Assembly: GCA_033442325.1 (NCBI GenBank)
Contig: JAWQFM010000007.1
Span: 82,038 to 146,037 of the forward strand
DNA from: Salpingoeca rosetta
Taxonomy: Eukaryota > Protista > Choanoflagellata
Reading direction: 5' to 3'
Length of the DNA: 64,000 nt
A program made the translations under genes and the position numbers. The stretch's first letter is position 1, and every line of letters starts with the position of its first letter. Positions 29,184 through 59,447 of the stretch are shown piece after piece. The notes beneath the pieces are model-generated. The model worked only from the letters and a program-made list of their open reading frames with translations, was not told where the DNA came from and searched no databases.

Positions 29184-32101
<2,918 letters not shown>

Positions 32102-32375
32102 CGTTCCAAGTTTGTTATTGTGCGATGGGAGCTGTCTCACACCTCACGTCACGCTTCCCTCACAAACACCAAACAGCTCAGATGTCGTTCTTCGTCGCTG
32201 TTGTGTGTGTATTTGTGTGCTTGAAAGTTGGTTGAAGATATTCGCCAATCGCCCTCAACCGCACCGGCTTTCCAACGCGTGGGTGCATTTCCACAACTTC
32301 CATCCACCCAGCACCACCCCACCAGAACACAAGTAGCACGCTCAGATCACCACCACACAGACACACACAGACAAG

Positions 32376-32613
32376 ATGATCATCCCTGTGCGCTGCTTCT
32401 CCTGCGGCAAGGTGATTGGCAACAAGTACAAGCGCTTTCTCGGCTTTGTGGATGCAGAGTACGGCGAGAGGTCAGTTCTCAACAGGACGTATATGTATGC
32501 TGTGTGTGAGTGTTGTGTGTTGTGGGAAGTGTGTTTAGAGAGAGAGAGAGAGAGTGTGTGTGTGTGTGTGTGCGTATGTTTGTTTGTACTTTGTGTGTGT
32601 GTGTGTGTGTGCA

Positions 32614-32654
<41 letters not shown>

Positions 32655-32914
32655 ACGTGTCGTTGTCGTGCGTGCATGTGTGCTTGTTTGTCTGTGTGCA
32701 CTTTTGTCCACCATGTGCGTGTTTTTGTTCACCAGCACAATTCTTACCCCCTCGCCAACAAAACCAAACCTACTCTCCCTCAACGACAACACCATGCAGC
32801 AAAGCGTTGGATGAGGTTGGCCTGAAGCGGTATTGCTGCCGTCGTATGCTGCTGACACACGTGGATCTCATTGAGAAGCTCCTCGAGTACTCTGCCCTTG
32901 AGCAGCGCGACTGA
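32376..32914 (+). CDS. RPB10: RNA polymerase I/II/III shared subunit RPABC5 (RPB10); 2 exons
   Basis: Exons 32376-32470 and 32800-32914 give [15 protein letters not shown]...[19 protein letters not shown]. Confidence 0.97.
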
Positions 32915-33042
32915 ACCAGCCACGAACAAACCCTTCCCCCCTCCCCCAGTTGTTGGAGTCATCGTTTCCGCATGATGTCGGCGCGACTACCATTTGTCCT
33001 GCATCAGTCATGTGTCAGCTGCGCCCTCCTCCAACCCACTGA

Positions 33043-33100
<58 letters not shown>

Positions 33101-33675
33101 GACACATAATGTACATTCTCCTGCCCCATGCAATCTCTCCCAATCCGTACCTCACTCGCTCTTTTTCTGCAATTCTTCCTCACCCCGCTTGATACCCTCA
33201 GCGCGCGCGCTCCCATGTTGACTTCCCGTCCACCCGTGTAAACGCTTGCTTGCTTGATTCCCTTTTCTGTTGGCGTGTCACATTACATTTTGGCTTAAGA
33301 CAACATGAACCGAAACCCTCACGTCTACACATACACAGCGACAAAGGGAAATCAAACACACAAACACGTGCACACAGAAAAGTGTTGGGAGCGCGAAGAG
33401 CCAAGGCCCTCAACAACGCACAGACACACCACTCACACGACAACAAGGGCAACATGGCACAAACACACAAAGACGAGGACTCGACACAGCAAGCTAGCGG
33501 GATGATAGGTGCTGAGAACTGGAAGGGGGGGGGGGGGACAGGGAGTGGGATACCCAGGGGGCACAACCCGCACCACGCGACTACGCATTCACGTGAGACA
33601 ACAGCGAGTGGGCGGGTGGGCGCGTTCATGGATTGATGTGGGTGTGGGCGATGGCTGTGGCAGTTGCAGTCGCCT

Positions 33676-33805
33676 TTAGCGCACGGTGACAATGTCGTCA
33701 ATCTTCATGATGCTGCGGACCGTCTCGGCAGCAAACACAACGGCGCTCGTCGACACCAGCAGCGGCTGCACAACATTCTCCTCAAGAATGTCCGTGATCA
33801 TGCCC

Positions 33806-33901
<96 letters not shown>

Positions 33902-33949
33902 TGCGCACGGGAAGACAGTGTCAGGCAGACCATCAAGACAAGAGCCACT

Positions 33950-33985
<36 letters not shown>

Positions 33986-35091
33986 GCTGCGTGTGCGCGT
34001 GTACCTTGAGGATCTTTGTGCTGCCTGTGGAGACCTCCTCGACGCGATCCGCCGTTGCCATCACGTCGGGGGTCAGGTCGTCAATGTGCGCAATTGGCCG
34101 GCACCCGAGCGACTGCACGGCAGAGGCGGCGATGGTGTCATGACATTCGCAGAGAGGGTGAGGGAGAGGTGAGGCAGTGTTGGGTGAAATGAGGCTGTGG
34201 CGTGGAGCCATGGCGAGGATGAAGGCGCAAGCAAATGGCTCCAGTGAACTCAAAACCAAGGAAAAGGCAATGCGCACCGACGCACCCTGCAGATGAAGTC
34301 AACTTGGTCGCGCTCAATGTTCTTGACAACGTTGATCTTCATCTTGTTGAGGAAGTGCAGCGCCTGGTCGCTCACAGCTTCCCTGCGCACGTGCAAACAG
34401 TTTGGGGGGGGGGAGGAGGGGAGCAAGACGAGAAATTGGCGTCAAGTGTGTATGTGTGTGTGTGAGAGTGTGTGTGAGTGTTGTGAGTGTGTTCGGTGGG
34501 GGTCGGGAATGGTGCAAACAACGGCAAAGGTGACGAGGCAGCATCAGCAACAAAAACAACAAACGCAGACAAAACGATCAAGCAGTCGAGCCGCAGCACC
34601 TGAGGATGCTCTTCTGGACGAGGAGGACGTTGCAGCCAGACTTCTTGATCTTCTTGCACAGGTTCATAATGTAATTGCGCTCCTCCTTCAGCACGCGGTC
34701 CATCTGAGAATAGTCCGAAATCACAACCTGGTTGTCAAGCTGTCAAGTGCACAGGCAAAACGTCGCAGCAATGGGCAAACGTGAGCAAAGGCAGTGGCGG
34801 GAAACGCGTCGGCACACGCGACACGTGCGTTGTTTACATTGCACAGGCCTCACAGCAACAAGTGCAACAATTCGAAGCAGTGCGCTTCCACGAACGAACG
34901 AACAAATAAACAAACCCACATACAAACAAACACACAGAGTATACACACAGAGTGTACACACAAACAAACAAACAAACAAACAAACAAACAAACAAACAAA
35001 CAAACAGACAAACAAACGACGGAACGAACCCAGAACCCACCCACACACACACCCACACACACAACACACACAAGCATTCACACCCCTCTGC

Positions 35092-35128
<37 letters not shown>

Positions 35129-37079
35129 CTGCGTGTCCCGTGTGAATGCTCACGTCTGTCTTTGGGGCGGAGAGGCAGAACTGGACAAGGGCAATCTTTG
35201 CGTTGTCCTGCGAGTCGCGGTTGCTCATGAGGTGCGAAAAGTGCTTGTCAATCACAACGCCGTCAACAAGCTCTGTGTCCTCAATGGTGCCACTGCAATC
35301 AGCACACAAGACATGCGAGGAACAGAGTGAGCCACGCCAGAAACGTAGAGGAAGGAAGAGAAAGAGAGGCGTGCACACACACACACGCACACTCGCACAA
35401 AAGCACACACATACTCGCACACACACGCACGCGCACGCACACACACGCACACACACATGAGCGCAAGCATTCGCAGGCGCAATGCGTGTACATGAAACCA
35501 TGAGACTGCAACTCACTCGAGCTTCTGGATGAGCTTGATGTCGTTGAGGTCGACGGTGCAGGCCTCCTGGTCGGCAACCTTGAGCACGGCATCGACGACA
35601 ATGGGGGCAATCGTGTCGGCGTACAGCGACACGACCTTCGAGTTGAGCGATGTCTTTGCGCTCTTGATCAGCTCCTCGCGGTCAGACAGCTCAATCGGCG
35701 TCGACATCTGCCATCAACGACAAAAGCAAAGGGAAGAACATATGGCAAGAGGTTGCGTTGTCGTTTGGTGCGTGGGTGGGTGGGTGAGTGAGCGTATTTT
35801 GCAGCTGTTGAAATGGGGGGGGGAGGGTGCAGTAAGGGTGTGACCGCGCCGCTGTGCGACTGCGACTGTGCGACTGTGCGACGTGATGCATGCAACAACA
35901 CTTGTTGTCACCCGCAAGCGGAAGCAGCAAAGCACGCTTGCGCGGGCAACAGCCCTGGGCATGTGCGGGCCCTTGACGGTGTTCTCATGGTTGGTCTGCA
36001 AAACAACTTACGGCCTCGAGGATCTCTGCGCTCTTTGCGGCGGCCAGGCCAAAGGCGTTGGAGATCTCGCTGGGGTGAATGCCCTTGCTGAGAAGGCGCT
36101 CGCAGGCATTGAGCAGGCTACCGGCAATCACCACAACGGAGGTTGTGCCATCGCCAGCCTCCACATCCTGTGCCTTGGACAGCTGCACCAGCTGTAAAAG
36201 TGCGCGCACACACACACACACACACAATACAGGAGTGAGAAGTTTGCACACTGGATCGCACACAGACACAGACACACACACGCGCTTACGCACACAGACA
36301 CATACGCACAAGAAGAAGCGCTCACGCTCATACTCTGTTTTGTCAGCCTCTGGCGGGTGAATGATCACACAGGCCACTCACCATCTTTGCGGCAGGGTGA
36401 AGGACGTCGATGAGGTCGAGGATGGTGGCACCGTCGTTGGTGATGGTGACACTGCCATCGGCCTTCTGGATCTGCACATCCACAGATCGCATGATACGTC
36501 GCCACGCACGACAACACCAGCCACAATCCAAGCATGAGGTATTGAAGGTCAAGCGTTTCAGCAAACAACACGCCAGCGTCGCCTCCGCTCCCACGCACCG
36601 CTTCCAAGCACCAGCCTGAGAGCGCATTCAAGCGATCTCACCATCTTGTCCATGCCCTTGGGGCCAAGACTGGTGCGAACGGCATCGGCGACGGCTGTGT
36701 TTCGGAGACAAGGGTGCGCGTTGGGGAGTTGACAGATCAAATGAGCCTCAAACAAGGACGGCAGTGGACACACTGTTGACTGCTAGAACCTTCTTCTTCA
36801 CTCACCCATACAACAACTACAATGACAACAGAAACGATGCCGACGACGACTGCTGCTGCGCATACGTGGCCGGCATCATGTTTTCTCTCTTCCAACACCA
36901 TGGCACAACAGCATCGATGACATGCCCCAGCACCATGGCACAAACGCACCCTTTGCGGCGGCAATGTTGGACATGCGCACGGTGGCGGGCTTGGACTTGT
37001 CCTTGTAGACGCCGCCTTGGTTGCCGCCAGCGGCAGGGGCGGCGGGAGCGGCGGGGGCAGCGGCCTGAGGTTGGCTCAT
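33676..37079 (-). CDS. CCT4: T-complex protein 1 subunit delta (CCT4); as assembled, about 120 aa near the C-terminus are missing
   Basis: DKSKP...[78 protein letters not shown]. Confidence 0.92.
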
Positions 37080-37431
37080 CGTGGCGGGTGGTGGTGCTTG
37101 TGTTTGGTCGAGGGGTTGGTGGCAGTTGCGAGGTGAGGGTGGTGAGTTGTGGTTGTTCGGCCTCGTGTGGTGGTGGTGCTTGTGTGTGTGTGTGTTGTTG
37201 GCTGGTTGTGCGGCTGCAGTTTTCTTTTATTTTTGCCTTGGCGGATGATTTGTAAAGAAAAATATCAATGATTTGTGCTGATATCAGCGAAAATATGCCC
37301 GACAGCACAAAACAAATCATGACAAACAATACGCGCGGGAGGAGTGAGGCCTCGCGACAACGCGGCGTTCCAACGCCACCAACAAAACCAGCCAAAACCA
37401 CAACAGCGACAGCAAAGATGACAAGACGACG

Positions 37432-37466
<35 letters not shown>

Positions 37467-37743
37467 CAAACCTACAAACACCCCCACACCTGCCGCTGCA
37501 CCAACCAAACTGAGAGTCGAGCCAGCAGCAGCAGAAGCAGCAGAAGCAGCAGCATTTGAGTGGCAGGCGTGACAGAGGAGAGTGGGAGGTGGAGAACATC
37601 AGTTGTGGCTGTTCCATCAATACTTCAATACGTCGCTTGCTTGCTTGCTTGCTCATCCCCCTCCCCTTCCTTCCTTCCTTCCTTGAACCTGCACGAACGC
37701 GGAAAAACAAAACCTTCCACAGCAACCAGGCAGCTTCACACGA

Positions 37744-39248
37744 ATGAAGCGTGTTTGGGGCAGCATGGCGGTGCTTGGCGTGTTGCTGCTGGCGTTGCTG
37801 CTGGGCTCGGGTGGCAGAGTCGCCGTGGCACAAAGCAGCACCAGCAGCACCAGCAGCACCAGCACCACAACAGCCAGTGCAAGTGGAAGATCAAGTGCTG
37901 GTGTTGTTTTCTCATCAGCCACAACAATCGAGCCGCCGCCAGCAACCACCACGGCAGCAGCAGGCAGTGCCAATGGCACCAACACCACCGCCAACACTGC
38001 CTCATACAAGAACCCAAGCATAGTCTGTACGTTCTTGCAACGTTGTGTTGCTGTGAGTGTGGTGGCACAAAGTGCAAGTGCAAGGGGAGGGGGGCTTTGT
38101 TTGTACTTGGTACGAGGCGTGTCTGATCCTTTATGCATATTGCTCGCAACGGACGGGTGTGATCGTGCATAGTGCATGCGTGTAGCAACCCATCGCACAG
38201 CACCGTTTCCACACATGCCTGCACGCTGCGGCCCGTTACAATGCCACCCTCTCACTTGCTTACGCGATCGCATCCTCATCCTGCACATGTTGCACTGCCA
38301 ATAGATGCGGCGTGGTATGCCGAGGTGGCCCTGCTAATCTTGCTCCCGTGCATCATTGCAGTGCCAAGCCAAATCCACCACACGTCCCTCAAGGTCGAGC
38401 ATGCACGAGCACATGACAAAGCGCCATGCAGTGTTCTGCACAACGCCAGAACCTGTGATCCTGCAATGCCACACAGCACTTTGCCAATTTGCCACACACC
38501 ACACCACCCCCTCCCCCTCACTCCACGAAATCCACTGGTATCCTTGCCGCACCATTATTCCCTGCAGGTTGGCACCATTGCAGCGCACCTCGCAATGCAC
38601 ACCGTCCTCATTGCTGTACTGCTTCGCCAGCACCACGACAGCACACAGATCCCCTGCCAGGTTGGTTGATAATCACCAGTGTGCCTTTGTGTGTGTGTGT
38701 CTGTGCCTGTGTGTCTGTACCTGGTTTGTGTGTGTGTGTGTGTGAATGTGTGTTTGTGTGTGGATGTGTTTGTATGTGTGTGTGTGTGGATGTGTGTCTG
38801 TGATCGTTGTTGTGAGACGGATGTCGATTGGTGTTGCATTCGGGTGTGGTTCTGTACGTTGCATGCGTGCCGCAATGTTGAATTATGCATGCCTACGCTG
38901 TGAACAAACGCTGCGCTGTCAAATGTGTCAGCCACCAACAACATGTAACATCCGTTGCCTTGAACGTGCGTGTCCAACAGGTGTGCGGGTTGGTGGTGTT
39001 GGGGTCCGTGGCGCTGCTCATGTGCACGTGGGCAGCGCGCGCAATGCTCATTTACCAGCGCGTCATCATCACGCGACGCGAAAACGATATCTTCGCTGCT
39101 GTTGGTCGGTGGTGGTGCGGGACCCGTCTGGCACCCGCTGTTGTCGTTCCCGTTGCCCTCGCCATCGCAGCCTGGTTCCTCTTCCCAAAGTACGCGCGGG
39201 ACGCATGGGGCAGCAACACACACACACACACACACATTCTTGGTGGTG

Positions 39249-39286
<38 letters not shown>

Positions 39287-39288
39287 TG

Positions 39289-39350
<62 letters not shown>

Positions 39351-39649
39351 CTTGTGCGCCTGCATCGCAAGCAAGATTAGCACCATCACAACCGTGTCGC
39401 ACTCACCTCCTCTCCCCCATCCTGTCATCCTGGTTGCATGCAATTGCATCATCAGCAACTTCAAGGAGAGCGCGTGCATCCCAGCATGGCAGACGCCAAC
39501 AACATATATGCTTCTGACCACGACGGTTGTGGGCTGTGTTGTTGCTTCTGCACACTTACTCATTGCCCGCGCTTCCCCGGACATTTACTCTCCAGCTGAC
39601 AACATCGTTCAGGTGTGTGAGTTGGTGTGTGTGCGTCTGCGAGCGAGTG

Positions 39650-39687
<38 letters not shown>

Positions 39688-40088
39688 GTTTGCACGAATT
39701 GCGTGTTTGTTGTTCGTCAGTCGCCAGAAAGGAGAGTGCTTGTGGGTTTGCGCCTTGCGTGTGAATCTCAAAGGTACTGCCCCACTCATCATCTCGTTCA
39801 CACCGTTAGTCCTCACACGCCACCTGTCCTTCTCTCCACCTGCATTTTGCACTCCAGCGCGCCACGTCCCAGTTTGTGCTGCACGTGCTGGTGTGCTGCC
39901 TGGTGCTGGCGTGGGTGCACATCGTTCCCTCCAGCGACGCCCTTGTCAGCGTCTTCTCGGCAGCGCTCGTGCTCATGGTGGTGCGTTGCTAGTCGGTGTA
40001 CTATCAACGCATTCTTGAATATGACGCCAGCAACAGAACACAGTTCCTGAACACATGCACATGTAACACACACACACGCGCGCGCGCG

Positions 40089-40156
<68 letters not shown>

Positions 40157-43100
40157 TCGCATCAAACAACATGCAACGCACACGCACACGCACGGCGCCC
40201 ACTCATTCATCCACCCGTTCACGCACTCATCCACTCATTCACTCATCCTTCTCTCCCCGCCTGCCGCCTTGACACCGTGTAAAGCTGGTGGAGTACTTGG
40301 AGTTTCTGCTGCTGCACACATGGCGGCGACGCTGGCTGCTCGCTGGCTGCCAGGAAACCGACGACAAGGTATGCTGTGTGTACGTGCGTATGTGTGCGTG
40401 CGTGCGTGCGAAAATGCCTCCTCGTCCACCGAATCTTGAGGCTGCTTCGTATTCAGCCTCAGTCCACACATGCCATTCACACAAACACCTCTCGCTGTCA
40501 CATGATTACATCATCACATCGCATCGAATACACATTGTGTCTCTTTAATCACTGTGCTCACATGCCCAAAATGTGACCTGCACACGACAGGATGAGCTGA
40601 TCGAGTTGTCGTTTCCCGGCGACCCGCACTACGGCGCCGATGTGGACGAAATCAGGAGGCACAGAGGTACAGTGAGCAGCTGAGATCTGTATTGGTACTG
40701 TGGCCTCGTGTGTCCTTCCTTTGTCTGCACGCTCCCTTGCCTGCAGGCAACATCTCCTTCCGTGTGTGGGATGTGCGTTTGTTGAGCAACCACGGGACGT
40801 CAGGAAATGCGCTTGTGCGTTCCACGTCGCGCAGTGATACCACCCTACTCACAGCCATCACGGGCACACAACCTCGCACACAGATGCGTGCAACTTCGCC
40901 ACAGAGGCGGCGCGACGCCAAAACTCGTACATCCGTGAACTCCGCACCCAAAACAGCAACGCAAGGTGCGCTGTGGTCTCGCATGTGGTTTGTACCTTGC
41001 GTTTGTTGCTGTTGCATGTATTCGTGGTTGTTGTGTGCGTGTATTGATGATATGTGTGCACGTGTGTGCGTGTATTGATGATGTGTGTGCACGTGTGTGT
41101 GTGTGTGTGCATGCAACGTGCATCAGGTGAGACAAGACCTTAAATGTTGTAATACAAGGCATGGTTTGCTTGGTGGTACTGACGCTATCTTAAACACGCT
41201 GTGCCACATGTACACATTACACTTTCTGCACCACACTCCTCCATGACACAGTCTTGAGTGGGACAATGACCTTGGCGGTGTGCGTCCTGGCTCGGGCTAT
41301 TTCGACAACATCGACCATCTTGGCGGCGTGATTGCACAGCAGCCTCGCAGCAGGTGCACACCGCTGCTGTTGTTGACGTTTGAATGCTGTTGCCGCTGTT
41401 GTTGACGTTGGTGATGATGTCGGAAAAACGAGTGGGCCTACTACTTTTTTGTTGTTGATCGTGCTGATGGTTGTGGCTGGTTTGCATTGGTTGTCTTTGT
41501 TTCTGCCATCCACACATCACGCATTCCAATCATCACGACGACATACTCAACGATGGCCCATCACAACCACCGTGTTTGTTGCGACATCAGGACTGAAAGT
41601 GACAGCAGCGGACAATCGGGCCAGTTCGACTCGCTGGACGCGCTCTTGTTTCTCGACACGCCTGCACATCAGCAGCAGCAGCAGCAGCGGGACAGTGGTG
41701 CCCGCCACCAGGCAACGACGCACCAACAACACCAACAACAAATGTCGAGAGGGGGCAGCAACGGCACGCGCCCACCTCAAGCCCAAGATGTCGTTTTGTT
41801 GCACGACGACAATGACGACCATCAACATCAAGGCCGCGATGTGTACGCTGAAACTGACGATATTGCTGATGACGATGATGATGATGATGGCGCGAAGCTG
41901 CACCGTGGCACATCATCTTCGCAGCAGGAGCACACGATCCGGGTGATCAGTTCTCGAAGACGACGGAAGCAATCGATGGCCGCCAATTCTCGCGCGTACG
42001 CCTCCACACGCAGCACACGCGCACACCAGCAGCACGCCTCGATGCAACGGGGTGCTGCTGCTCGCCGGTCTAGCAGGAAGACGACGCTTCGCTCCAGGTG
42101 GGATGATGAGCCTGGGATTAAGATGGAGATGGCGAGGAGCAGTGTGACGGGTTGACAGAAGACGCTTTGTATTGCAGTCAGCGTCGTTGATCATACACGC
42201 ACACAAGCACACAGGCTGACACACGCGCACATACGAACATACACTTATTTCCCTCATTTACTCACGCTCTTACGCTCGCCAACTCACTCACTTGTTCACG
42301 CTAGGTCTGCCTCGCGATCACGCCACTTGAGGAGCACCGGAATGGCAAACGCCGATTTGGCGACACTTCGGTTTTGCCTGCAAGCAACGCAGGACGATCA
42401 CCGCATCAGTCCTTCGTCTGCACCTGGTCACTGTTTCCAGCGTCCTACCAGCACTTCCCCCGTCAACATGCGCCCACATGGTAGGAAGACGCCCATCACA
42501 TCATTATGATCACACAACATGGTGCACCTGTTTGCAGCCGATCACATGTTGTGCTTGCAAATGGATACGCTGCACTCATGAACACTTGCGTGTGCGTCTG
42601 TCTGTCTTGACGTTTTCGTGCGTGTGTGTGTGTGCGTGCGTGTGTGTGTGTACGTGTGTGTGTGTGCGTCTGTCTGTCCTGACGTTTTCGTGTGTGTGTG
42701 TGTGTGTGTGTACCTTTCACTTTTCCGTTCCAGCAAATTCCATTGCAACGCTGCGACGTGAGGATCTCGACAACATGCGGTAATTTACATCGCTGCTGTA
42801 TTTTCTGCTTTGCTTCGGTGGTCCTGGCTTGCTCATGCAGCTTGTTCCAAGACGTTCCGTACTTTCAAAAGCGCACTCCCATCGATGCGCTTGCGATGAG
42901 TCACATCGACCGCACATATTCACGCATGCAAATGCACACACAAACATGCACACCCACCCATTTTGTTTGCAGGTGTGCGCTGGCAGCATCAGATCCGCGA
43001 AAAGTCACGCTTCGCCCGTACATTTCGCTGCAGAGCAGCCTGCTCGCCCAGCAATGTGAGTCACGTTCAGCGGCGTGTGCATATGTTATTGTGAGCAGTG

Positions 43101-46100
43101 CATGGGAGCGATGGATGTGTGTGGTGTGTGATTGTTCGGACTTGCGTTGTTGCCTTGCTCTTTGCTGCTGTCGTCGCAACCAGAGTTGATGTGTTATGAA
43201 TGTAACCCCCCCCCCCTTTGCAACACCACCAACGCCCACGGTTTATTGCGTGTATCATGCAGCCTCAGCGAGCGTGAAATCAAACGCCAGCAACGAAGGG
43301 CCCGCATACGATCTCGTGTCGGATGCGTCTGAGTCGCGAACGCCAACACCGCACACTGGCACAGGAACCTGCGGAACACACGACGGGGCGGCACAGCGCA
43401 CGGAGCGGTGCAGGCAGCACAGTTGTGTTGAAGACGCGAGTCGTCGCGGCGACACCAGCGTTACCAGTGTTCACCAAGGACACACCGAAATGGTGATGGC
43501 CCAAGATGAACCTCAATCTACAGCCGACGGCCGATTCGCGCAACCCAGCCAAGAACGAGAGCAGCAGCAGCGACACCAACAGCAGCGACAACGACAACAA
43601 GAGCACGAAACAGAGGCGTCATCAGCTGGAAGCGCCGCATCAGACGAAGATCCATACGTCACCATCGGTAAGTTGTGGTTGATTCCCCCTTTTCTGTTGC
43701 CGGCAGTCTTGATCTCTCCCTGCGTGAGACACACAGTCATGTTAATAATCACGTACACTCACACACTTACACATTTACACACTTACACACTTAAACACAC
43801 ACACACACACACTTTCTTACACACGTGTATAGACCCTCGGTTCGCGCCCATTTGGCGAAACGTGCCCATCCCAAACACGCGGCCAGAGGTGCAGCAATCA
43901 CCAGGAGAAGTACCATTTACCACCGTGGCCAACAGCAGCAACACCAGCAGCAACAACAGCAACAACAGCACCGGCGGCGATGATGCAAAGGCTACCACAC
44001 CCAATGCAACAGACATTAGTGTTCAAGCAGCATCAACTCCAGCGAAAGGCCCCCTCACGCCAGCACAACTCGCCGACCTGCGGACCCGAAAGTACACGGG
44101 CATCAGCCAAACAGCACTTGTTGCGCTGCGCAGGCGCACGCGCACCGCAAATGCCACGATGAACGTCGCCCTGCGTCAGAACAGCGCACGCGGGTTGCCT
44201 GCAGGCACGGCATCAAAGGATACTCCCGCTCAACCCGCACATGGCAGCGAAGGCGATGCGAGCGTGATCAGTGTCAGCGACAGCAACCCAAACACAGACA
44301 GCAGCACCACGACCAGCAGTGCAGGCGCGAAAGACAAGGTGCAGCAGAAGGACCAGCAGCAGCAACACAGAAAGAAGAACAAGAAAACGAAGAAGAGGCG
44401 ACATGTGTGGTTGAGGCGGAAGCGACACCACAACCAGCCAGCACAGCGTCCCACGTCTCACCACGACGATGACTCGTCTGATGACGAGTGTGCAGCAAGG
44501 AATGGTGCGGGTAACGCCAGCACGGGTATTCGTGTGGATGCACGACACGACGGAGCCGATGTTCATGACGAAGCGACTTGGCTGCCCTACCGACAGCAGC
44601 GCTGGTCCATGTCAAACGCATCCGTGCTTGGGATGCCGGGGAGCGCGCGCATATCCCCGCAGCCGTCCGCAACCACTTGGCCTGCGCCCCCAGAGATTTG
44701 GGGTGATCACTTCCCGTCGGGTGTGAGGCACGATGCTTACAGCAGCCCAGGAGGCATGCATGCACATGTACTGGATAGCACGCCAACCGCAAGTACTCCC
44801 CACGAAGTTGCCGTGTCACTGCCAGGGTATGACGACGTGAGCCATGAAGAAGGTAAAATCATCAAGTACGACTCCTCCTCGCGCGGGAGTGAGAATTCGT
44901 CAGAAGCCGTGTTCCCACAGCTGCGTGGTGACAATGGGCGCGATGCTGCTACTGATGGTGATGATGGTGATGATGGTGATGATGGTGATGATGACGAGGG
45001 GGATGGCGATAGCAACAGCGGTACGCACGCGACTCTTCCATCGACGGACAGCGGGCACCCCAGTGACGCTGACACACGTGTAGCGGGCAACGACGTGGTG
45101 CCATATGTCAGCATGAACGTTCAGCGAGGTGCGTTGCACGGCCGTGAATATGCGGATGTGGGGATGTGGTACGGCCTTGTCTTGCCTGCTGTGTGTGCGT
45201 GCGTGTGTGTGTGTGTGTGCGTGCGTGTGTGCGTGCGTGTGTGTGTGCGTGCGTGTGTGAGTGTGTGTGCATGTGTGTATGTGTTGCTGATGGGTGTTGG
45301 TGTGCAGCGCGAGAATGACAACACCACTGCTCATTGTCACGCTTGCGTACGAATTCGTGTCTATTGCGTTCTGCAGGCCGTCCGTGCGCGCTGAGTCTTC
45401 GCAACAAGACATCGACGGAGCAGACGCCATTCAGGGAGGATCAGCTTGAGATCCAGGAAACCATTGGCCAGGTGAGACGGTGCTAAACGCTACCCGCCGC
45501 GCCATCTGCCGCTATTGCACACGCACACACTGTGATTGAAAAGACGAAGGCTTGTTCCGCAGCACACACACACACACGTGCACACCGCTTGCTTGTACTC
45601 ACACGTGCACACACCATGCATGCACGCACACACTGTACAGGGCGCGTGCGGTGTTGTTTGCCGTGCCATTCTCCGCTCTGACGAGCGAAGCCGGTGTGTT
45701 GCCGTCAAGCTGCTGCCAAACCCAAACGACACAGCAGGTACGAAGGCTTCCATGCATCAGTCTGTGGGTGTGGGTGTGGGTGTGGGTGTGGGTGCTATTC
45801 TTTGGCTGTCCATCACCTGACCGGGGCGTATTGCATTGGTTAGCTGTTGATGCGTCAATCACGATATCGTCTCGCGAACATGATTTGTTCGTTCGCACAG
45901 GCCGTGCGTTGTTGGATGCTGAGGAGAAGATGCTCAGAGGGCTGGATCATACCAATATCGTTCGGCTGATTGGCACTGTCAGCACAACACCCCCCATGCT
46001 CGTGTTCGAGTACATGCGACACGGCTCTCTCGACAAGGTATGTGCAACACACACGGCACTGGTGTATTGACGTTTATCACATTGCACGCTGTTGTTGATA

Positions 46101-46340
46101 TCGCCCGCATCACACGTTGTTTTGAAACAGCACCGCCCAAGCAAACTAGTTGCGTTGCATTCGTTCATCTCCGACACCACGCCGCCATCGCCAACAACAA
46201 TGTCATCTTGTCTGCTGTGTTACCTCAGGTGCTTCGGAAGCGCCCCCATCGGCCGATTGAAGTGATGCAGTGGGCCGTCAACACTGTTGCTGCAGCAGAA
46301 TATCTCCACCGAAACAGGATCATCCACCGCGATCTCGCTT

Positions 46341-46425
<85 letters not shown>

Positions 46426-47146
46426 CGTGTGACGTGTGAATGCGTGCTTTCCCGCGCTTGGGTGTGCGAAAATGCTTCACAACATCAACCTTCACAACAT
46501 CCACCTTCACACTCATCTTCCGTCTTTCACCCTCATCAACGCCTGTTCCGCGTCGTCCCGCGCATGTCACAGCCGGAACATCTTGCTGGATGGCAACATT
46601 GCAAAGGTACACACATGGACGCTACAAACCACAACACAGCACAACAATCAGCGCGACAATCCCACGCACGACGCTGTGCTTCAGTGCCCACCCTCACCAC
46701 GAAAGCCCTACTACATCTACCACCACGTTCGCCACGCTTACCCCCACTGCCATGCCATCATGGCTGTTTCATTGCTGTTGTGTCACCGCAGGTGGGCGAC
46801 TTTGGCTGCAGCATTCGCCTTCCACCCAATGAGGACGTTGTCACGGAGACAGAGGCAACCATTCCAGTCAGGTGTGAACACGCGTACCTCTGGTACTTGC
46901 TACTGATTTTGCTGCGGTGTTCTTGGTTTTGAGTGCCCACACATCACCGCCTCACTCCATTGCGTCGCTTCTCAGGTGGACCTGCCCTCAAGCCCTCAAC
47001 TATGGCCTCTACAGCACCAAGAGCGACATGTGCGTTTGAGTGACGAAGATGCGACAGTGCTGTGTCCCAACATGCGATCCTGCCATCTGTATATATGTGT
47101 GTGTGTGCGTGTGCGTGTGCGTGTGCGTGTGCGTGTGCGTGTGCGT

Positions 47147-47210
<64 letters not shown>

Positions 47211-47634
47211 GAGTGTGTTAGAGCGTGTCACTTCCTCCAAGACTCGCGCTTCCCTGTTGATCGCACGATCTTTGTACTCACACTCACGTTACGCGCTTGC
47301 GTACACAATTGCAGTTGGAGTCTTGGCATTGTTCTCTTTGAGCTTGTGTCTGGCGGTACCGTGCCATACAAGGTGTGTGTGTGTGTGTGCTTGGCGCGCG
47401 TGTGTTTGCACTGCGCGTTCTTCTGCATCAATGGTGATGCACTGCCACACAAAGAAGCAAAACGGATGTTTTGTTTGGCTGTGTCGCGCTCACTGTCTTG
47501 CTTTCGTGTTATGGTTGCTGATCACAAACATCAGGGATGGGGCAACATCGTTGTCGTGACACACGTTGGACAGGGTCACCGTCTCCCGCCACCAAAGGTG
47601 TGGGCGTTGTGTGTGCGTGCGTGCGTGCGTGCGC

Positions 47635-47698
<64 letters not shown>

Positions 47699-49392
47699 GT
47701 GCGTAAACATGTCACTGTGCGGACGCGTTGTAAATGCCTAAGTTCGCACGAACATGTGTCAACTTGTTCGTCACACTGTTGTGTAGGTTGCGACATCACA
47801 CAACAACATCCATTGCACCTCATCACACAACACACGCTGCTGCTCACGTGTTGAAATGCTGCCTCAAATGCCGATGCGATTGCCAGGGCTGCCCGCGCAA
47901 GATGTACGAGATCATGATGGACTGTTGGCACCCAAACCCTTCCGAACGGCCAACGGCAGCGGCGCTGAAGCTTCGACTCATGGAACTCGCCTTTGAGTAC
48001 GTTCAACACACCGCCCATCCATGCAGCGACCTGGTTTTTTTCATGTTCGACCCGATGCGTGACAATTGCAAGCTGGCGAAGCAAAGAAGTCGAAGAAGCA
48101 GAGATGAAGAAGGATGCATAACAAAGCGAAGATTTTTCAGTTGTCATCGCCGTTGTGCCTCGTCTCAATGCCACACTCACCACTGCAATACATCCATTTA
48201 CTCACGACAACGCATTCATTCTCATTCAACCCATCTTTGCAGCACAACTGCACTTCGTGACGTGTATGAGACAGAGGACTCGCCAATTCAGGACAAATAC
48301 AGGAGCAATGAGGTGCGCTGCTCTTGACTGCATGCGAGACACGAGACGATGCGATACGAGGAACGCTTTGCAATTTCTTCTGCAACGCATATGGCACAGC
48401 CTCTGAACAACAGCTACGAAGATGCTCACAACTCAGCGTGCTTGTTTTGACAATTTCGCTATTCGCTGCTTCTCGTTGCCTGCAGGCATTGGCGACGTCG
48501 TGGACACTGAAGGGGTGCCCAAGCCTCATCGATCCAGAGAAGGTACACGGGAAGAGCTTATAGGCTTATGGTTCCATGCGACACGCTTCAATAGAACACG
48601 ATCTTGTGTGGACTGAACATGTTTTGCATTTGTTCATCGATGCTTCTCCACAGCGCACGAGTCGAGTCGCAACCTCATATCATGATGCCATCACATCTCG
48701 CTTCTGTTTACAATCCAGATGGCGGCAATGCTGACAGATGATGGTGATGATGACGATGACGAACGCTTTTCAATCACGAGTGTTCACCAGCGAAACAGCA
48801 TCCAGACATCACGTTCCCGCTGCAAGACGCACAGCGGCGCCAAGCCCACATCACGTACGTTCTATTGGATGCAATTCAACCACACAACACAACATAACAC
48901 AACAGCCAGCCAGCAAGTAGGCACAATCATGAGGCGTAGCAGCTTGCACACGCACAGAAACACGCATACAAATGACAACACGCATATCCGCGCACACACT
49001 TGCTCATTGCACACACTGTGTGTCTTTTATGTCGACATGTACATGTGTGCAGGAGGAAACACGCTGAAGTCGCGCGGGCTGCCGCCACCGCCATCCCACG
49101 AAAACCAACCAACATACACGCAAATGGGAACACGGTAAGCTGGTGTGTGTGTGTGTGTGTGTCTGTGTGTCGGTGTGTTACATCGAGCAACTGAGGATGG
49201 CGTTTGACAATGGTTAAACAAGCTACACCCGCCCATCTCACTCCTGTCCCCTTGCAACTCTCAAATGCAAGCAGACGATCAACGGTTGCATATCCGCAAC
49301 ACGCTCACAAGACGATGAGGAGAAATGAGACGCTGGCCATACCAGAGGAAGACGAGGAGGTAGAGGAGGAGAGGGAGTCGGCGATGTATTGA
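37744..49392 (+). CDS. Predicted 7TM (GPCR-like) receptor fused through a long disordered linker to a C-terminal tyrosine kinase domain; about 31 exons, about 1700 aa
   Basis: Signal peptide and S/T-rich ectodomain in 37744-38026. Seven hydrophobic helices in exons 38305-38393, 38568-38660, 38981-39189, 39456-39612, 39858-39980 and 40285-40368. Phase-consistent GT-AG linker exons span 40591-45128. Kinase exons in 45377-47996 carry IGQGACG, VAVK, HRDLACRN, DFG, IPVRW, SDIWSLG and DCW. The tail ends ESAMY*. The kinase call is secure; the fusion is inferred from splicing. Confidence 0.72.
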
Positions 49393-50351: not shown

Positions 50352-51140
50352 TTACAGCTCCTGCACAGGCAAGGAGCGCTGTTGGAGGTGACACATGGAC
50401 GTTGTGTGAGTGAGCGAAACCGTGAGTGAAAGAAAAAGAGATGCAGAGAGAGAAGCGTAATGAAGTCGAAAGGTAATGGGAACCCAGATTCACAAGCGCA
50501 CACATCACGAATCATGCACCACACTCAAGCACAGCAAACACACACACGCACACACACACACGCACACACACCCACACACTCACTCGTTGATAGCGCTCGG
50601 AGCGGGAGCGTGTGCGTCCATGCTCAGCCGATGTTGAGAGCTGCAAAGGCCCAAAGCGTGAACATGCGTGAACATGTATGTGCATGTGTGCAAGTGAGTG
50701 TGTGTGTGCAAAGGACACCACAGCAGGCAAACACGCATCTAGGCGCACCACATCAAGCATGCGCCAGCCCAACAAGTGCTTGTGTGCCAGCAGCACACAC
50801 CTGTGGGTGCAGTGCGGAGTACGGGGGTGGTGATCTGCGTCCCTGCACGTCATGGCTCGTTCGCGTGCGCCGCAGTGGGTTTGGCGCCGATGCGCGTGTG
50901 TACGGCGGTGGAGGTGGCAGACTTGACTCCAACACCATCGCAGGCTGTTGTGGATGATGCTGCTGGAACACCTGTGGGGATGTGGAACGATACAAGCTCT
51001 GCTCCTGTTGCACAGCAAAGGGTTGAAAGACACACAAGCGAGTGAGGACAGCAGCATGCTAATGTCCAACGTGTATGCCAAGCAGTACACGCGATGAACA
51101 CCAACGTCATGACGCATACACACACACACATGCACACACA

Positions 51141-51189
<49 letters not shown>

Positions 51190-54100
51190 GAACACAAACG
51201 TAAACACCAGCACAGCACGTTTGCCCTCTCACCATGAGCTGTGTGGCGAGTGGAGAGGATGTGCGTTCGCGCACGCCACGATCGGGGCGCGATGGCGGCG
51301 GCACAGCGCCAAACGCCGGCGAATTCTTCGTGTACAGGCCAGCGCCATGATGCAAGGGCGGCGTCCCTGATCGCGTGAGCACCACGCGCCGCGGGGACAC
51401 GCTGCTCGACACGTTGTGTGCGGAGAGGGGGTAGCTGCTGCGGTTGTCGTGGCAGTGCAGCTGCGTTGGCGGTGTTGATGGTCGCGCCATCACATCAACG
51501 CTTCGCCCCTTGATGCGCCTGCTCTCCCGCTGCTGAAGCTGCCCCGGTTGCTGGTGCGCAAACTGATCCGCATGGTGATGGTGATGTGCGTGGGTGTCAG
51601 CGGCGCTGTCGGCGGACATGTGACGGTACGCCATGCGGGGGTGATGTTGACGATGCTGCCCATGGGATGATGCTGGGTGTGATGGTGCGCCCACGTGCAC
51701 CCGCGTCACGGCCACGGGGTCAGGCAACATCTGCCGCTGCAACTGCAGCACACGCTGTCGCACAGCACCCTCTGCCCTCACAGGCGATTGTGACTGCTGC
51801 GACTGCTGTGACTGTAGGAGCAACAGGCGTGGCGAAGACGACTGTTGGCGCTCAACAGACCGCCATGACGCGCTGTGTCGCCGGTGCCGCCGCCGCCGTG
51901 GTTCCTCGCTGCTGCGTCTCCTTCGATCGCCGCCATCGTGGCCGTTGTAAACGTCGTCATCATCGTCATCATCGTCATCGGCATGCGTGCTGCCGTGTGG
52001 GCGGGGCTGCGAGGAGTGGCGTTTCTTCCTGCTCCTGCTGCTGCCGTTGCCCCTGCTGCGATTGGGCCGAGCTCGCGTCTGTAAAGATGGCGGCGTGCAG
52101 CCAGCCGTGCTCGCAATCATCGCGGTCATGCCAACATCATTGGCATCAGCAGCGGCGGCGAGCTCCGCTGACTGCTGCGACCTGCGCCGGAGCCTGTGCC
52201 GCCTCCCACCATCACCACTGCCATCGCCACCACTGCTGCTGTTGCTGTTGTTGTTGCTACCTGCAGTTTGCTGCGCAGCGCATGCCGTTCGGCTTGGTGA
52301 TGTGCGGAGAATCACGTCTGCGTCCACCTCGACACCGCGGGACCGACGGCGCCAGTCGTCTGCGCCCTTCCGCGCCGCCGCCACGTTCTTGATCGCCGTC
52401 TGCAGCGGCACGCGGTGGAACTTGGGCCGGCCCTCGTTCCCATCGCCCCCGCTGCTGCCCCCGCTCGCGTATCCGGTGCTGCCGCTGTCGGTGCCCGTTG
52501 CCGTCGCTGTCGTCGTGAGCGGGTGTGGTGCGTTGTGGCGCCCAGCCCCGTTGCTGCTCTTGTTCGGCACGTCCTCATCGCTCCACCGCTGAGTGTGCTG
52601 TGCCAGCGGTGATGGATCCAGCTGGAGCACGCGGCGAGGATCGCCACTGTTGCCGGTCACGCTCGCATACGAGCCCACGTCGTCGACACTCACGTACGAG
52701 CCGACATCCCGCGCGTCTTCGTCGTCGTCCACGATGGTGGCATATGCGCCCACGTCAATCGGAAGCACGCTGGCGTAGGACTGGCCACCTTCAACAACAG
52801 ACGCATAGCTGTTGATGTCGTCATCGTCATCATCGCCACCGCGCAGCAAGACGCGACGCCTGTCTGCCACGCCTCGAGCAACAACACGCGCACGCTCGAT
52901 GACCACGCCGTCGCCTTCGTCCTCAGCAGCGGTATCAGCCAGCACAGCAGTGCGTGTGTGTGCGATGGCGTCATCACGGCCACCATGAATGAGGCCTCGC
53001 CCAGGGTTTGCAGACGTGGCACGCGGCGACGACCCAAGCGACCAAGGGCTCTCGCCATCTGCGTCGGTGCCGCGCGACCCAGAGCTGCCATCGCCGTGGG
53101 ACGACAGGTTGCCACTGCGCACACCGCTGACGAGTGCACAGGCGAGTTCGTGGCGCGGGTGTAGCAGGCCTGGGGGTGCACCTGCCCGGCCGGGCCAACG
53201 CCGCAGCGCATTGGCACCAAGCTCGCGCGAAGGGTTGGAGACAACCGTTGCCGCGAGCCAGGGCTCGTGGTCGTACACGCTGGACACCCCGACAGACTGG
53301 GAGCGAGCAGGGTGATGCTCGCGAAGCGAGAGCGTGTGCAGAGGAGACGGCAGCGGCGGTGGCGAGGATGATGACCTTGTTGTTGTTGTTGTTGCTGTTG
53401 CTGTTGGTTTTGCAGCTGCTCCGTGCGACAATGACGCTTGCTGGTTGTCCTCCTCACTGTCATCACCACAGTGCTTGTCGTGACGACGGCGGTGGTGGCG
53501 AAGGCGGGGCAGCTGGGACGCGATGGCCTGGCATGCGGCCAGGGTGGGCAGGGAGTGTGATCGCCGCAACGCGTGATCCGGTGTGTCAAAGTCAAGCAGC
53601 GCCGCAGACGACGCAAACAGGTGGTGGTCGCGCGTCTGGTCGGCAGAGTCAGCATGCAGCAGCGCGCTTGCGTCGTTGAGGTGATGCTCTTGCTGTTGCA
53701 GCAGCTGCTGCGGGTGATTCCGCACATCCGTGTCAAACTGCAGCAAGCTTTCGCGCACATGCACTGCACCTGCGCCTGCGCCCGTATGTTGTCTGCCAGC
53801 ATGCACTGGGTCCTCGGCGTGCGAGAACCTGGCAATGTGGCGGTTGAGGTGCTGCAGTGCACGCACGCGACGATGGCCCTCGCTCTGCTGTGCACTCGAG
53901 TCCGCAGAGGAGCGGTTGTGCGACGCGTCGTGGCTCACATCCATATCCTCGGCATCGTCGTCATCGTCATCGTCAACATCATCGTCATCAACATCAACAT
54001 CAGAGTGCGGCAGTTGCATGACTTCGGCGCCGTTGTCGCTGTCGGCCTCCAGCTCTGCCCGAATCTCCAACTCGCGTGTCTGGCGCTCTGTTGGCGGGCC

Positions 54101-55824
54101 GGGGGGGGGGAGAGATGAAAGCATACAGAACAGGCATGAGTTTGAACGTGAGCTATAATTATGTTGACGTGGGGGTGTTGGCGTGATGGACGGGAGGGGG
54201 GTGATTGGTGTTTCCGCTGTGAAAATCGCTGCGAGGAGGCTCGCTGAGCGGCAAGCACGCAATCCACACCATTTGAAGGCGTGCACATGACGAGCGAAAG
54301 ATCAACACACAAACACACACACACACACACGCACACACCTGTCTCTGAGAGGGTTTGGTAGATTGGCTCCTGCTGCGCCTGAAGCTCCTCGAGGGTGTAA
54401 TAGATCTGGCTCTCCTCATCACTGTCCGCTTCGCGGTAGAATGTCGCCGGTCGCTCCCGTCGCCCCCGTGGCGCCGCCTCGCTCGGAACATCAAAGATGG
54501 ACCTGGCAGTGGTGGCGGTGGCGGTGGTGTGAGCATGTGCGAGGGCTTGTGCGCGTGTGTATGTGTGGCTGTGCATGCAGGAATGTGTGTACTACACGCA
54601 TATGTATGTGTGGGTTTCGGCTCTTCCTCTTGAGTGTGGCATTTGCGTGAACTTACGCGGTCATTGTCATGCTGCGGACCATGCGGATGAGCTCGTGGTA
54701 CGACACGGCGCGGTCGCCACACGGCCGCCGCAGATACCCGGCACCCTGCAGTCGCCGTGGCAGGGGTGGTGGTGGTGGTGGTGGTGGTGGTGGGAAGGAG
54801 GAGAGGGTGAAGAAGGAGAATGGGAATGAGTGAGAGCGGCTTTGGGTGAAAGCCAAACAGGGAATCAGGGCACCAATGTTGACAGCAGTCCACATGTGTG
54901 ACCGACAGCAAGCAACCACATCACAGCGGCTGTACCTTGAGCGGTGCGCGAGCGTGGTAGTGAACGATGCTGCGCAGTGACTTGTGGCGGGCGTTACCAC
55001 CGGCGTCGCCAGCAATGCGGTAGCGGTGGCGGCGGACGACGTGAATGTCGTAGTGGTACACACGGTTCTTGTGGTGCGCAGACAGCACATACCTGCAGCA
55101 ACGATGAAGTCGAGGAAGGAAGGGAAGGAAGGAACACGTGAGACAAGTGCACGGCAGACAGAGACCAGGCGAGTGAATGGGGCTGCATTCTTCCGTGTGC
55201 AATGAGGATTGTGTGTGTGTGTGTGTGCATGGCTGTACTGCAACATACACATAGACAAATACGCCCGCACACATGGTTGATGCGCACGCCTGCATACGAG
55301 TACAGTGACAGCTAGACGAGGCAACGAACCCCGGAAAGTCGCGTGAGACGCGGATGTGGAAAGCGCCCTCACAGCTGGAGAGGAGAATCTGCTCTGATCG
55401 CTCCGTCGACACGAGGCCGAGGAACCACGCGTACGGCCGCCCGGTCCTGGTGGTGGTGGTGGTGATTGGTGGTGATTGATGGTGATTGATGGTAATTGAT
55501 GGTGATTGATGGTGAGTGGTGAGCCTTTGAAGCAGACGAGGAAGCGCACGCAATGGCGTCACACTTACACGCACACACGTGCACACAATCAACGATGGAA
55601 GGTCAGCGCGAGCAAGCAGTCGAGTTACTGACTTTGAGAGGCCGACGCCGCGGACAAGCTCTGATGTCTTCCACCACTTGAGCACATCGTGGAAACGCGT
55701 GCACAAGTCAACACTAGCAGCACCCTCTGTCTCGGATCCAAGCAGCCTGAACACGACAGCAGCAAGATGGCATTGCATCAAGTGAGTTGCTGAACAATGC
55801 GAGAGAGAGAGAGAGAGAGAGAGA

Positions 55825-55856
<32 letters not shown>

Positions 55857-55865
55857 GTGTATGTG

Positions 55866-55898
<33 letters not shown>

Positions 55899-57850
55899 CG
55901 TGGTACACGTGCACACCCTGCGGGGATGGAAACTGACATTTCTGATGTCACATTGCAGAGGGGTGTGTCGTCGTATTCGAGGGCATTGAGGGCGTTTGCC
56001 TTTCGCTGGTTGTTGGCGTGCTTGTGGTGCTTTCGCCTCCTCTTGTGGTGATCGCGAGCGCGGTCGCCTTTGCTCGGCGAGTGCCCGTTGCTGGTCAGCC
56101 GCAGTTCATTGCGGCGCTTTTGCCTGCAAGCACAAAGGGTGGACATAAACCAGTCACACGTGAGTACGCGGGCAGCAGGAAGTGCAATGCCGCACAGAAA
56201 CAAGAGCAATAAACATACAAACAAACAAACAAACAAACAACATACAAACAAACAAACAAACAAACAAACAAACAAACAAACAAACAAACAAACAAACAAA
56301 CATACAAACAAACATACAAACAAAAAAACAAAGCGGGCGCTGCACCTCTTGTTCGAAGTGCAGGCGATGGAGACGACAAAACCGAGAACAACGAGGAGGA
56401 GAAATCCTCCAACCGCAATCAGGATGTACGCCAGATCAGACAGGCCTGAAAAAATCAACCGTAACGTGCACACATGCGGGATGAGAGATGGGTGATACAC
56501 ACACACGCACACACGCACACACGCACACACACACACACACACACTCACACACACACACACTCACACACACACACACACACTTTCTTCCACCTCTCCTGCT
56601 CCCTCCTGGTTCGTTGGTCTGACGCTATGACACGTTCTCCCACCCAACACCAACACCGCCACGCCACTTCCATTGCCGCCGTGTGTGGGATCTGACCTGG
56701 GACGCCCGAGTTGGAAGCTGGCGGAGCACCAGTCGTGGTGGTTGTCGGCGTGCTTGCAAGCACCGTCAGAGTGTACCCTGTGTCCTGCTCCAACTGCCGC
56801 AATGTGTCTTCGTCCATCACCAGCTAACACATGCAAGCGAGAGAGTGAGGAGAGACACAAAACGAGAAGCGGGTGAGCAAGAGTTGCGCGATGTGTTGTG
56901 TTGCACTGTAGGCTGCGCAACTGTAATTGATATGCAGCCGTGTGCATGTGTGTGCATGTTGCGCTCTCGCGGGGCAGGGCAGAATGGAAGGGAGACACTC
57001 GTCATGAACACCAACCACATCGGTCACCACACTCGTAATCACACAAAATGGCGTGGGGTTATACTCACGGCTTGCAAAAGGCCTGAGGCAAGACACAGGC
57101 GGGTCTCTGTTCTACACGCGGAGAAGGTGACAGACACGGCGTTGCCGCTGCCCACAAACTCAAAGTACACGCGCGCGTGCAGCAGGGCTTCCAGTTCCCG
57201 TCGAAGCACCCTGACGGTGGTGATTGGCGGTGGTGGGTGAGCACGAGACAGCATAGGGTCGTGGTTCATGCACGCATGTGCAACGGTAAGTACAAGGCAT
57301 CATGTTAAAAGCAAAGGTGTGCAAGCACGAACGTTGAGTTGAAGGGATTGGCGTCGTGTGTCTGGACAAATACGGTTGTGGTGCCGGCGGTGTGGATGCA
57401 CTCGCCACTGGTCAGCGTCGACCCAATGTCGCACACGCACTCGCCATTCAGCCCGCACGCATAGCACGTCGCCTGCGAGCACGGCAGGCACTGTGTACTG
57501 TCACCACGACCGTCTGCTGCTGCTGCTGCTGCTGTTGCTGCTGCTGGGTAGTGGGCGGCGCCGCACACGCGACAGGAGCGGGTCACATCGTCTGCAATGA
57601 GCGGTGACGGGCACGATGTCACGCACTGGCCGTCGTGCAGGTATGTGTATGTCGGGCAGAGCACGCACGCGCCGTCACGTGTGCAGTTGGCGCAGTTGTC
57701 GGTGCAGCGTGCATTGGAGCACACGCGATCCGATGTGGCCGTGGGCGCAGCAACTTGCTCGGAAGACGCACACGCAGGCGACACCTGTGTTATGTGTGTG
57801 CGTGTGTGTGTGTTATGTGTGTTATGTGTGTGTTTTGTGCGTGTGTTTTG

Positions 57851-57917
<67 letters not shown>

Positions 57918-58838: not shown

Positions 58839-58900
<62 letters not shown>

Positions 58901-59447
58901 CACATACCTGGTTTGGGAGTGCTGCATTGGCTCGTGGTGGAGGAAGATGCGCACACACAGGTGTAGTCAACGTGTTGGACACCTCCACCACATGCGACGG
59001 AGCAGCTGCTGGCAACAGGCTCCCAGTTGCACGCGCCATGCACCCCTGCGACCACGCAGTTGTGTGTTGTGTGTTGTGTGTTGTGTGTTGTGTGTTGTGT
59101 GTGTGTTTGTGTTTGTGTTGTGTGTGCAATTTGCATGAGGTGAGTGCGCATGCATGCCAGCACGATGAAGCACAGTCATACAGCAGAGCACACAGCACCT
59201 GCTGCTGTGACCTGCACGTTTTGGCAGTGCAAGCAAGCACAAGCATGTGCTGGTTCCACATTGCATTGATCATCAAATCAAGGCATGCTGTGATGAGACG
59301 TGATGTGCATGTGCATGTGTGTGTGTGTGCATGTGTGTGCATGTGTGTGTGTGCATGTGTGTGTGTGTGTGTGTGCATGTGTGTGTGTGTGTGTGTGCAC
59401 GCACCTGTGGCAAGAGCGAGTGCCAGCACCACGATGAACGCCTGCAT
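50352..59447 (-). CDS. Single-pass receptor: signal peptide, TSP1 repeat, furin-like Cys-rich region, TM helix, intracellular SH2 domain, and a ~1000-aa tail with Tyr and PPxY motifs; 17 exons
   Basis: All junctions are GT-AG and phase-consistent. MQAFIVVLALALATGVHG then ACNW...CSVACGGG; CANC...CVLC...YLHDGQCVTSCP; TM AYILIAVGGFLLLVVLGFVVSIAC (56346-56445); SH2 WFLGLVS...GAFHIRVS...GYVLS...HYDI...SLRSIVHYH (54936-55446); ends RSLPVQEL*. Confidence 0.82.

Follow-up and report, generated by a model that had tools for sequence, protein, structure and literature searches.

In the choanoflagellate Salpingoeca rosetta, a single gene at positions 37744-49392 (+ strand) of a 64,000-nucleotide stretch of genomic DNA (contig JAWQFM010000007.1, hereafter the window) very probably yields one spliced mRNA for a 1704-residue receptor kinase, in which an N-terminal seven-transmembrane (7TM) module resembling that of a G-protein-coupled receptor (GPCR) is joined to a C-terminal tyrosine kinase. 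A sequence-only reading of this DNA had proposed that the two modules are fused in one gene, and the proposal is supported by splice junctions in RNA, transcript contigs, the share of k-mers found in RNA runs and an annotated product of 1704 residues. The locus lies on scaffold GL832997.1 (119781-131429) of S. rosetta assembly GCA_000188695.1, where the record coordinate equals the window coordinate plus 82037, and a neighbouring open reading frame (ORF) is 100% identical to the hypothetical protein PTSG_13169 of Salpingoeca rosetta, on which ground an origin from a filasterean (Ministeria) was rejected. The public annotation holds a + strand gene that starts exactly at window position 37744 and has a product of 1704 residues; since the model rebuilt here independently arrives at the same length, that annotation already contains the fusion, very probably with the same exons throughout. 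Gene model and architecture class are thus both already public, and neither constitutes a new discovery.

Open frame and transcript across the locus

The rebuilt gene has 31 exons and 30 introns, each bounded by GT..AG, with introns of 104-320 nt that in many cases carry (GT)n/(CA)n tracts (Table 1). Splicing of exons 1-7 from the ATG at 37744 gives 345 residues, the path through exon 25, in which the RNA-defined junctions were used, gives 1513 residues without a stop, and six more predicted exons (26-31) reach the stop codon at 49392. Exons 20-26 were placed by their GT..AG borders, by frame and by agreement in length with the annotation, and the acceptor at 49272 was chosen for the last exon, which brings the product to exactly 1704 residues. 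No stop codon occurs in the 1704 codons read across the 30 canonical introns, and within the 940 codons of the linker between helices and kinase the coding frame holds 0 stops, whereas the two alternative frames hold 14 and 47, so that the open path is not due to chance. The phase-consistent GT-AG path through a long linker into the kinase, as first read from the sequence, therefore stands on both the RNA junctions and the stop-free frame, with the length of the linker corrected from about 950 to about 940 residues. The tyrosine sites named in the same reading (GYFDN, PYISL, AYDLV, DPYVTI and PYVSM) and the kinase motifs HRDLACRN and IPVRW were all read in exons 8-25.

Table 1. Position and basis of the features of the receptor-kinase locus (window coordinates).
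Feature	Position	Strand	Description	Basis
Whole gene	37744..49392	+	Coding sequence of 5115 nt, 1704 residues	Splice model; length equal to annotated product with identical ATG
Exons 1-7	37744-38026, 38305-38393, 38568-38660, 38981-39189, 39456-39612, 39858-39977, 40285-40368	+		GT..AG, in frame
Signal peptide (predicted)	37744..37833	+	Residues 1-30 (...RVAVA/QSS)	Both scales peak in hydrophobicity at residues 4-22
Mucin-like extracellular stalk	37834..38026	+	Ser/Thr-rich	Composition and sequons
Seven transmembrane helices, exons 2-7	38305..40368	+		Two hydropathy scales
Cytoplasmic linker, exons 8-16	40591..45128	+	Residues ~346-1285, ~940 residues	RNA junctions, contigs
Tyrosine-kinase domain, exons 17-26	45377..47996	+	Residues ~1293-1550	Motifs, Pfam, PDB matches
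C-terminal tail, exons 27-31	48243..49392	+	About 150 residues	Predicted from GT..AG sites and frame
Intergenic region	37080..37743	.	~660 bp, between two start codons	ORF list, annotation

Two raw stranded RNA runs of S. rosetta, together with contigs from two further studies (X5 and X4), were aligned to positions 40200-46150. Over the exon of the seventh helix, the linker and the kinase exons, the reads were oriented almost exclusively as expected for + strand RNA, and reads or contigs contained the GT..AG junctions 40666/40884, 40965/41252, 45128/45377, 45471/45641 and 45737/45901, identical to those of the model. The shorter sides of the first two junctions measure exactly 76 and 82 nt, which indicates that further junctions within the same contig delimit exons 8 and 9, and the X5 contig (3571 nt) tiles exons 10-16 exactly, including small exons of 46 and 83 nt. 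Both contigs reach 1101-1103 nt upstream of exon 10, while exons 2-9 sum to 910 nt; the difference puts the start of the contigs in exon 1, about 193 nt upstream of its end, at a AGCAGCACC repeat, and by this exon arithmetic they cover all the 7TM exons as well as the linker. The X4 contig (2559 nt), which stems from an independent study, begins at the same place as the X5 contig, and the AGCAGCACC repeat of serine/threonine codons is a spot where a k-mer assembler would break. The only other contig break falls at a GATGGT repeat (44941-45021), where raw-read depth is 7-9. In agreement with this, the share of 31-mers found in RNA-type runs was 0.31-0.35 for 37744-40368 and 0.50-0.52 for 40285-45700, where exons only would be expected to give 0.318 and 0.492, respectively.

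The RNA data bear on a second view of the locus, in which a promoter within the linker yields a soluble protein of linker plus kinase and the 7TM-containing mRNA is a minor read-through form. Exon-normalised depth climbs about 2-3 fold from 5' to 3' (~3-6 over the exon of the seventh helix; ~8-12, and up to 24, over exon 16 and the kinase), being higher by that factor from about 43400 on than over exons 7-14, and contig depth rises as well (X5, 44.7 to 210; X4, 65 to 100 to 153). However, the rise is gradual, as 3' bias on an mRNA of more than 5 kb predicts, and reads as such, with a minor internal start also allowed. As to transcripts that end in the linker or start separately ahead of the kinase, no clustering of 5' or 3' ends was flagged within 40200-46150; moreover, junction-spanning reads and contigs connect all exons from 8 to 19, and the frame is open throughout. 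Two separate products are therefore improbable. RNA depth spikes (to ~95) and many odd joints were also seen at 43782-43980 and 41792-41990; they are due to reads of foreign transcripts drawn in by CAG/CAA and GAT codon repeats, and no splicing is involved.

It could further be argued that assembly or annotation has chained adjoining genes, or that the locus is a pseudogene, since Logan contigs by themselves are no proof of a single transcript and the Pfam column is empty for the annotated 1704-residue product, even though its exons give clear kinase matches. Such an artefact is nevertheless close to refuted by the absence of stops over 30 canonical introns, by stranded expression in several studies and by the retention of all catalytic residues. 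Peptides of the 1704-residue protein found no match in the supplements of Fairclough et al. (2013), and a coding length of 5115 was not found among the rows listed there.

Membrane module, linker and kinase

The first seven exons had been read as a signal peptide, a mucin-like ectodomain and exactly seven hydrophobic segments, and this is borne out by Kyte-Doolittle and Hessa-type free-energy scans, which agree on a signal peptide followed by seven transmembrane (TM) segments and neither of which finds fewer; beyond residue 346 neither scan gives a membrane-like segment. The approximate limits of the helices are residues 96-118 (TM1), 125-146 (TM2), 156-178 (TM3), 203-225 (TM4), 243-265 (TM5), 281-301 (TM6) and 307-329 (TM7). 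The signal peptide would be cleaved at a site placed from its A-x-A pattern, leaving a stalk in which 31 of the 65 residues are serine or threonine and which has two N-glycosylation sequons (NGT and NTT). Lysine and arginine number ~9-10 in the cytoplasmic loops and the stretch after TM7, as against 1 in the outer loops, a positive-inside pattern that puts the N-terminus outside the cell and the part after TM7, including the kinase, inside. The motifs quoted in the sequence-only reading are present in the 345 spliced residues: IPCQVCG, with Cys154 and Cys157 at the top of TM3, ESACIP, with Cys232 in the second extracellular loop (ECL2), and HTWRRRWLL, a basic amphipathic stretch directly after TM7. 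A fusion of a microbial (type 1) rhodopsin with an enzyme was considered and rejected, as TM7 has no lysine.

The tyrosine-kinase domain claimed from HRDLACRN and IPVRW is confirmed by motifs, by Pfam and by PDB matches. Pfam PK_Tyr_Ser-Thr is matched by exons 19 and 20, outscoring Pkinase on exon 19, and the PDB matches listed are tyrosine kinases only for exon 19 (Eph, Trk, Src-Abl ancestor) and for exon 26 (Abl, VEGFR2, MET, MER), while exon 20 is by itself too short for such matches to tell the kinase type. The motifs GQGACG, VAVK, EEKML (with the glutamate of helix alphaC), HRDLACRN, DFG, IPVRW and SDIWSLG were read from the sequence, and the HRDLACRN catalytic loop together with the IPVRW P+1 loop marks the domain as being of the tyrosine-kinase type. 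The catalytic lysine, the HRD aspartate, the catalytic-loop asparagine and the DFG aspartate are all kept; from this residue set the kinase is predicted to be catalytically competent, and a pseudokinase was rejected given the full set of catalytic residues.

Between helices and kinase lies a low-complexity linker, rich in glutamine, aspartate and serine/threonine, in which exon queries found no Pfam domain. It contains 14 tyrosines, including YVSM (of the YxxM type), YVTI, YDLV and YISL, an acidic DGD repeat (44954-45010) and, in its middle, a polybasic patch of 20 residues (44372-44431), which might interact with acidic membrane lipids or with calmodulin or, should the tail be cleaved off, function as a nuclear localisation signal. 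A 732-residue ORF of the linker had no match among proteins of 403-1281 residues, a length range outside which the 1704-residue product falls. The tail after the kinase has 5 tyrosines and the acidic end ...EEERESAMY*.

Several observations weigh against a coupled GPCR-like receptor kinase in one molecule, and these concern the model, the kinase, the linker and the helices alike. Linkage of the 7TM part to the linker in a single molecule comes from contig-length arithmetic, k-mer shares and annotation, the stretch of reads having begun at 40200, and exons 20-31 rest on prediction. In the kinase, the APE motif reads CPQ (glutamate to glutamine), departing from the Hanks-Hunter pattern, and no activation-loop tyrosine occurs in the kinase sequence, two features that suggest a regulation unlike that of textbook tyrosine kinases. 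With a disordered linker of ~940 residues, tight allosteric coupling of the helices to the kinase is unlikely. A Pfam scan of exons 4, 5 and 6 taken singly (E<=1) gave no 7TM family and no match of any kind, and exon 4, which encodes TM3-TM4, had no match in PDB, nothing meaningful in the ESM Atlas and, among 1.84 billion representative proteins, a spurious repeat protein only. All of the domain, fold and homology queries were made with single exons, which have low power, and the spliced 7TM domain was not queried as a whole. The search with exon 4 (38981-39187) among the 1.84 billion representatives also failed to return the annotated S. rosetta product, an unexplained result that may mean that this product is absent from that collection.

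These negative searches favour the view that the seven helices are a mere polytopic anchor or some non-GPCR 7TM fold, with neither G-protein coupling nor a ligand pocket, the protein then being a choanoflagellate receptor tyrosine kinase (RTK) in multi-pass form, which senses through its glycosylated stalk or through clustering. Absence of the class A motifs DRY and NPxxY, by reading, points the same way, as does the finding that the 7TM domains of published GPCR-tyrosine kinase fusions (GPCR-TKs) cluster with no GPCR family (Garcia De Las Bayonas and King, eLife 2025; PMC12716839). Against this view stand the weakness of single-exon queries and a layout typical of GPCRs, with the N-terminus outside and the C-terminus inside, seven helices, short loops, a cysteine at the top of TM3 positioned with one in ECL2, and the stretch after TM7. 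A polytopic anchor or non-GPCR 7TM module is possible but the less probable of the two. For the preferred GPCR-like module, the likeness is limited to its topology, the two cysteine positions just named and the basic amphipathic stretch after TM7, and assignment to the secretin/adhesion class is a lead rather than a result, drawn from short motifs only. The resemblance to secretin/adhesion (class B) GPCRs lies in cysteines in ECL2 and at the upper end of TM3, a tryptophan in TM3/TM4 and a helix-8-like stretch, but exons 4-6 give no 7tm_2 match, and the ectodomain, by composition and reading, is only a Ser/Thr-rich stalk, with no GAIN or HRM domain.

Known receptor-kinase classes and a proposed mechanism

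A survey of 23 choanoflagellates, among them S. rosetta with its proteome from Fairclough et al. (2013), in which a 1704-residue product stands at the present locus, has described 11 GPCR-TKs, which combine a 7TM domain with a C-terminal tyrosine kinase, in craspedids and acanthoecids (PMC12716839). Their kinase domains cluster together and with those of sponge GPCR-TKs, their 7TM domains fit no known GPCR family and, according to the authors, none has been functionally characterised so far (PMC12716839). Older precedents of 7TM-kinase proteins are the GPCR-tyrosine kinase-like fusions (GPCR-TKLs) of oomycetes and amoebozoans and the fusions of GPCRs with phosphatidylinositol phosphate kinases (GPCR-PIPKs) (PMC5784254), and a cross-kingdom survey has reported that a few metazoans, sea urchins among them, have GPCR-type transmembrane kinases of the tyrosine-kinase clade (PMC10463195). 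The premise of novelty for such a fusion is thus outdated, given the choanoflagellate and sponge (PMC12716839) and sea urchin (PMC10463195) examples. Altogether, 93 tyrosine kinases have been counted in S. rosetta (Fairclough et al., 2013).

With the published GPCR-TKs, the S. rosetta protein has in common an N-terminal 7TM domain without detectable relatives (single exons being what was queried here), a C-terminal kinase that matches metazoan tyrosine kinases best, and a host among the craspedids and acanthoecids (PMC12716839). Seven N-terminal helices and a C-terminal kinase are found in one polypeptide, with tyrosine kinases as the best matches of single exons, and the protein belongs by its architecture to the GPCR-TK class. 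The GPCR-TKL/Ks of acanthoecids and the GPCR-TKLs of oomycetes and amoebozoans are likewise 'GPCR-bigrams', in which a protein kinase is joined C-terminally to a 7TM domain, but no DEP domain is present in the S. rosetta protein. Moreover, the kinases of GPCR-TKL/Ks are of the tyrosine kinase-like or other types, whereas here the loops and best PDB matches are those of tyrosine kinases, and GPCR-TKL/Ks have been published from acanthoecids only (PMC12716839), whereas S. rosetta is a craspedid. The GPCR-PIPKs (Dictyostelium RpkA, Phytophthora GK4 and one copy reported in S. rosetta) share the order of 7TM domain, linker and C-terminal catalytic domain, but theirs is a lipid kinase and here it is a protein kinase, and the LR(x)9GI motif of their linker was not seen on reading the 1704 residues. 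In common with classical and choanoflagellate RTKs, there are a signal peptide, an extracellular part, a cytoplasmic tyrosine kinase and tyrosine-rich regions with the potential for docking; in contrast to classical RTKs, which pass the membrane once, the S. rosetta protein passes it seven times, and it has a tiny ectodomain (the 65-residue mucin-like stalk), an unusually long juxtamembrane linker of ~940 residues and no activation-loop tyrosine.

In the S. rosetta protein, an orphan seven-helix GPCR-like module very probably stands where classical RTKs have their single-pass anchor. After cleavage of the signal peptide, a short, O-glycosylated stalk would face outward; the helices end with the C-terminus inside, where a long, disordered, tyrosine-bearing linker tethers the kinase, followed by a tyrosine-bearing tail. 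When the 7TM module or the stalk senses a signal, the receptor may change its conformation or cluster, bringing kinases together, and the tethered kinase may then phosphorylate tyrosines, either within the linker and tail of the same molecule or in an adjacent receptor. The resulting phosphotyrosines could serve as docking sites for the many SH2 and PTB proteins of S. rosetta. A disordered tether of 940 residues favours control by proximity or clustering over rigid allostery, and a direct coupling of ligand sensing to phosphotyrosine output is an inference. It is unlikely that the gene escaped the 2025 GPCR catalogue, its 7TM module matching no GPCR profile, and represents a new orphan family that drives phosphotyrosine signalling without G proteins; if it did escape, it would be the first GPCR-TK in a genetically tractable choanoflagellate.

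Genomic setting and significance

Upstream of the receptor gene, the annotated order is a BMS1-type gene, a SAP gene, a Zip transporter gene, RNA_pol_N and a CCT chaperonin gene, the last of which lies on the minus strand (32000-37079) head-to-head with the receptor gene, its first-exon ATG at 37079, and has a Cpn60_TCP1 match. Its first exon (36876-37079) we take to be like that of the delta subunit (CCT4). The annotated CCT product has 418 residues, which is short for a CCT subunit, and the public CCT gene model may miss exons. The SAP-domain gene (27589-28308), whose protein is presumably like SARNP/Tho1, consists of a single exon of 240 residues, intronless genes being uncommon here. Downstream, the minus-strand neighbour at 50352-59447 contains one open exon of 1059 residues (51107-54286); this ORF had no match among database proteins of 582-1853 residues, which suggests that its product is probably longer than that range or unannotated. 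Positions 60000-62200 form a block of low GC content (0.41, compared with about 0.55 elsewhere), made up mostly of long (GT)n runs, one of them with 97 copies, and of GT-rich tandem repeats of 26-76 nt.

Animals have two great receptor systems, one based on GPCRs and the other on tyrosine kinases. That the two occur as a natural covalent fusion in the closest relatives of animals indicates that their modules were freely recombined before animals arose. The present copy is expressed, its catalytic core is intact and its gene model has been checked against RNA at the exon level, and its remaining value is that a species open to genetic work thereby offers an expressed and well-supported example. 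As transfection and CRISPR editing are available in S. rosetta, the role that a 7TM module plays for a tyrosine kinase is practical to test in this organism.

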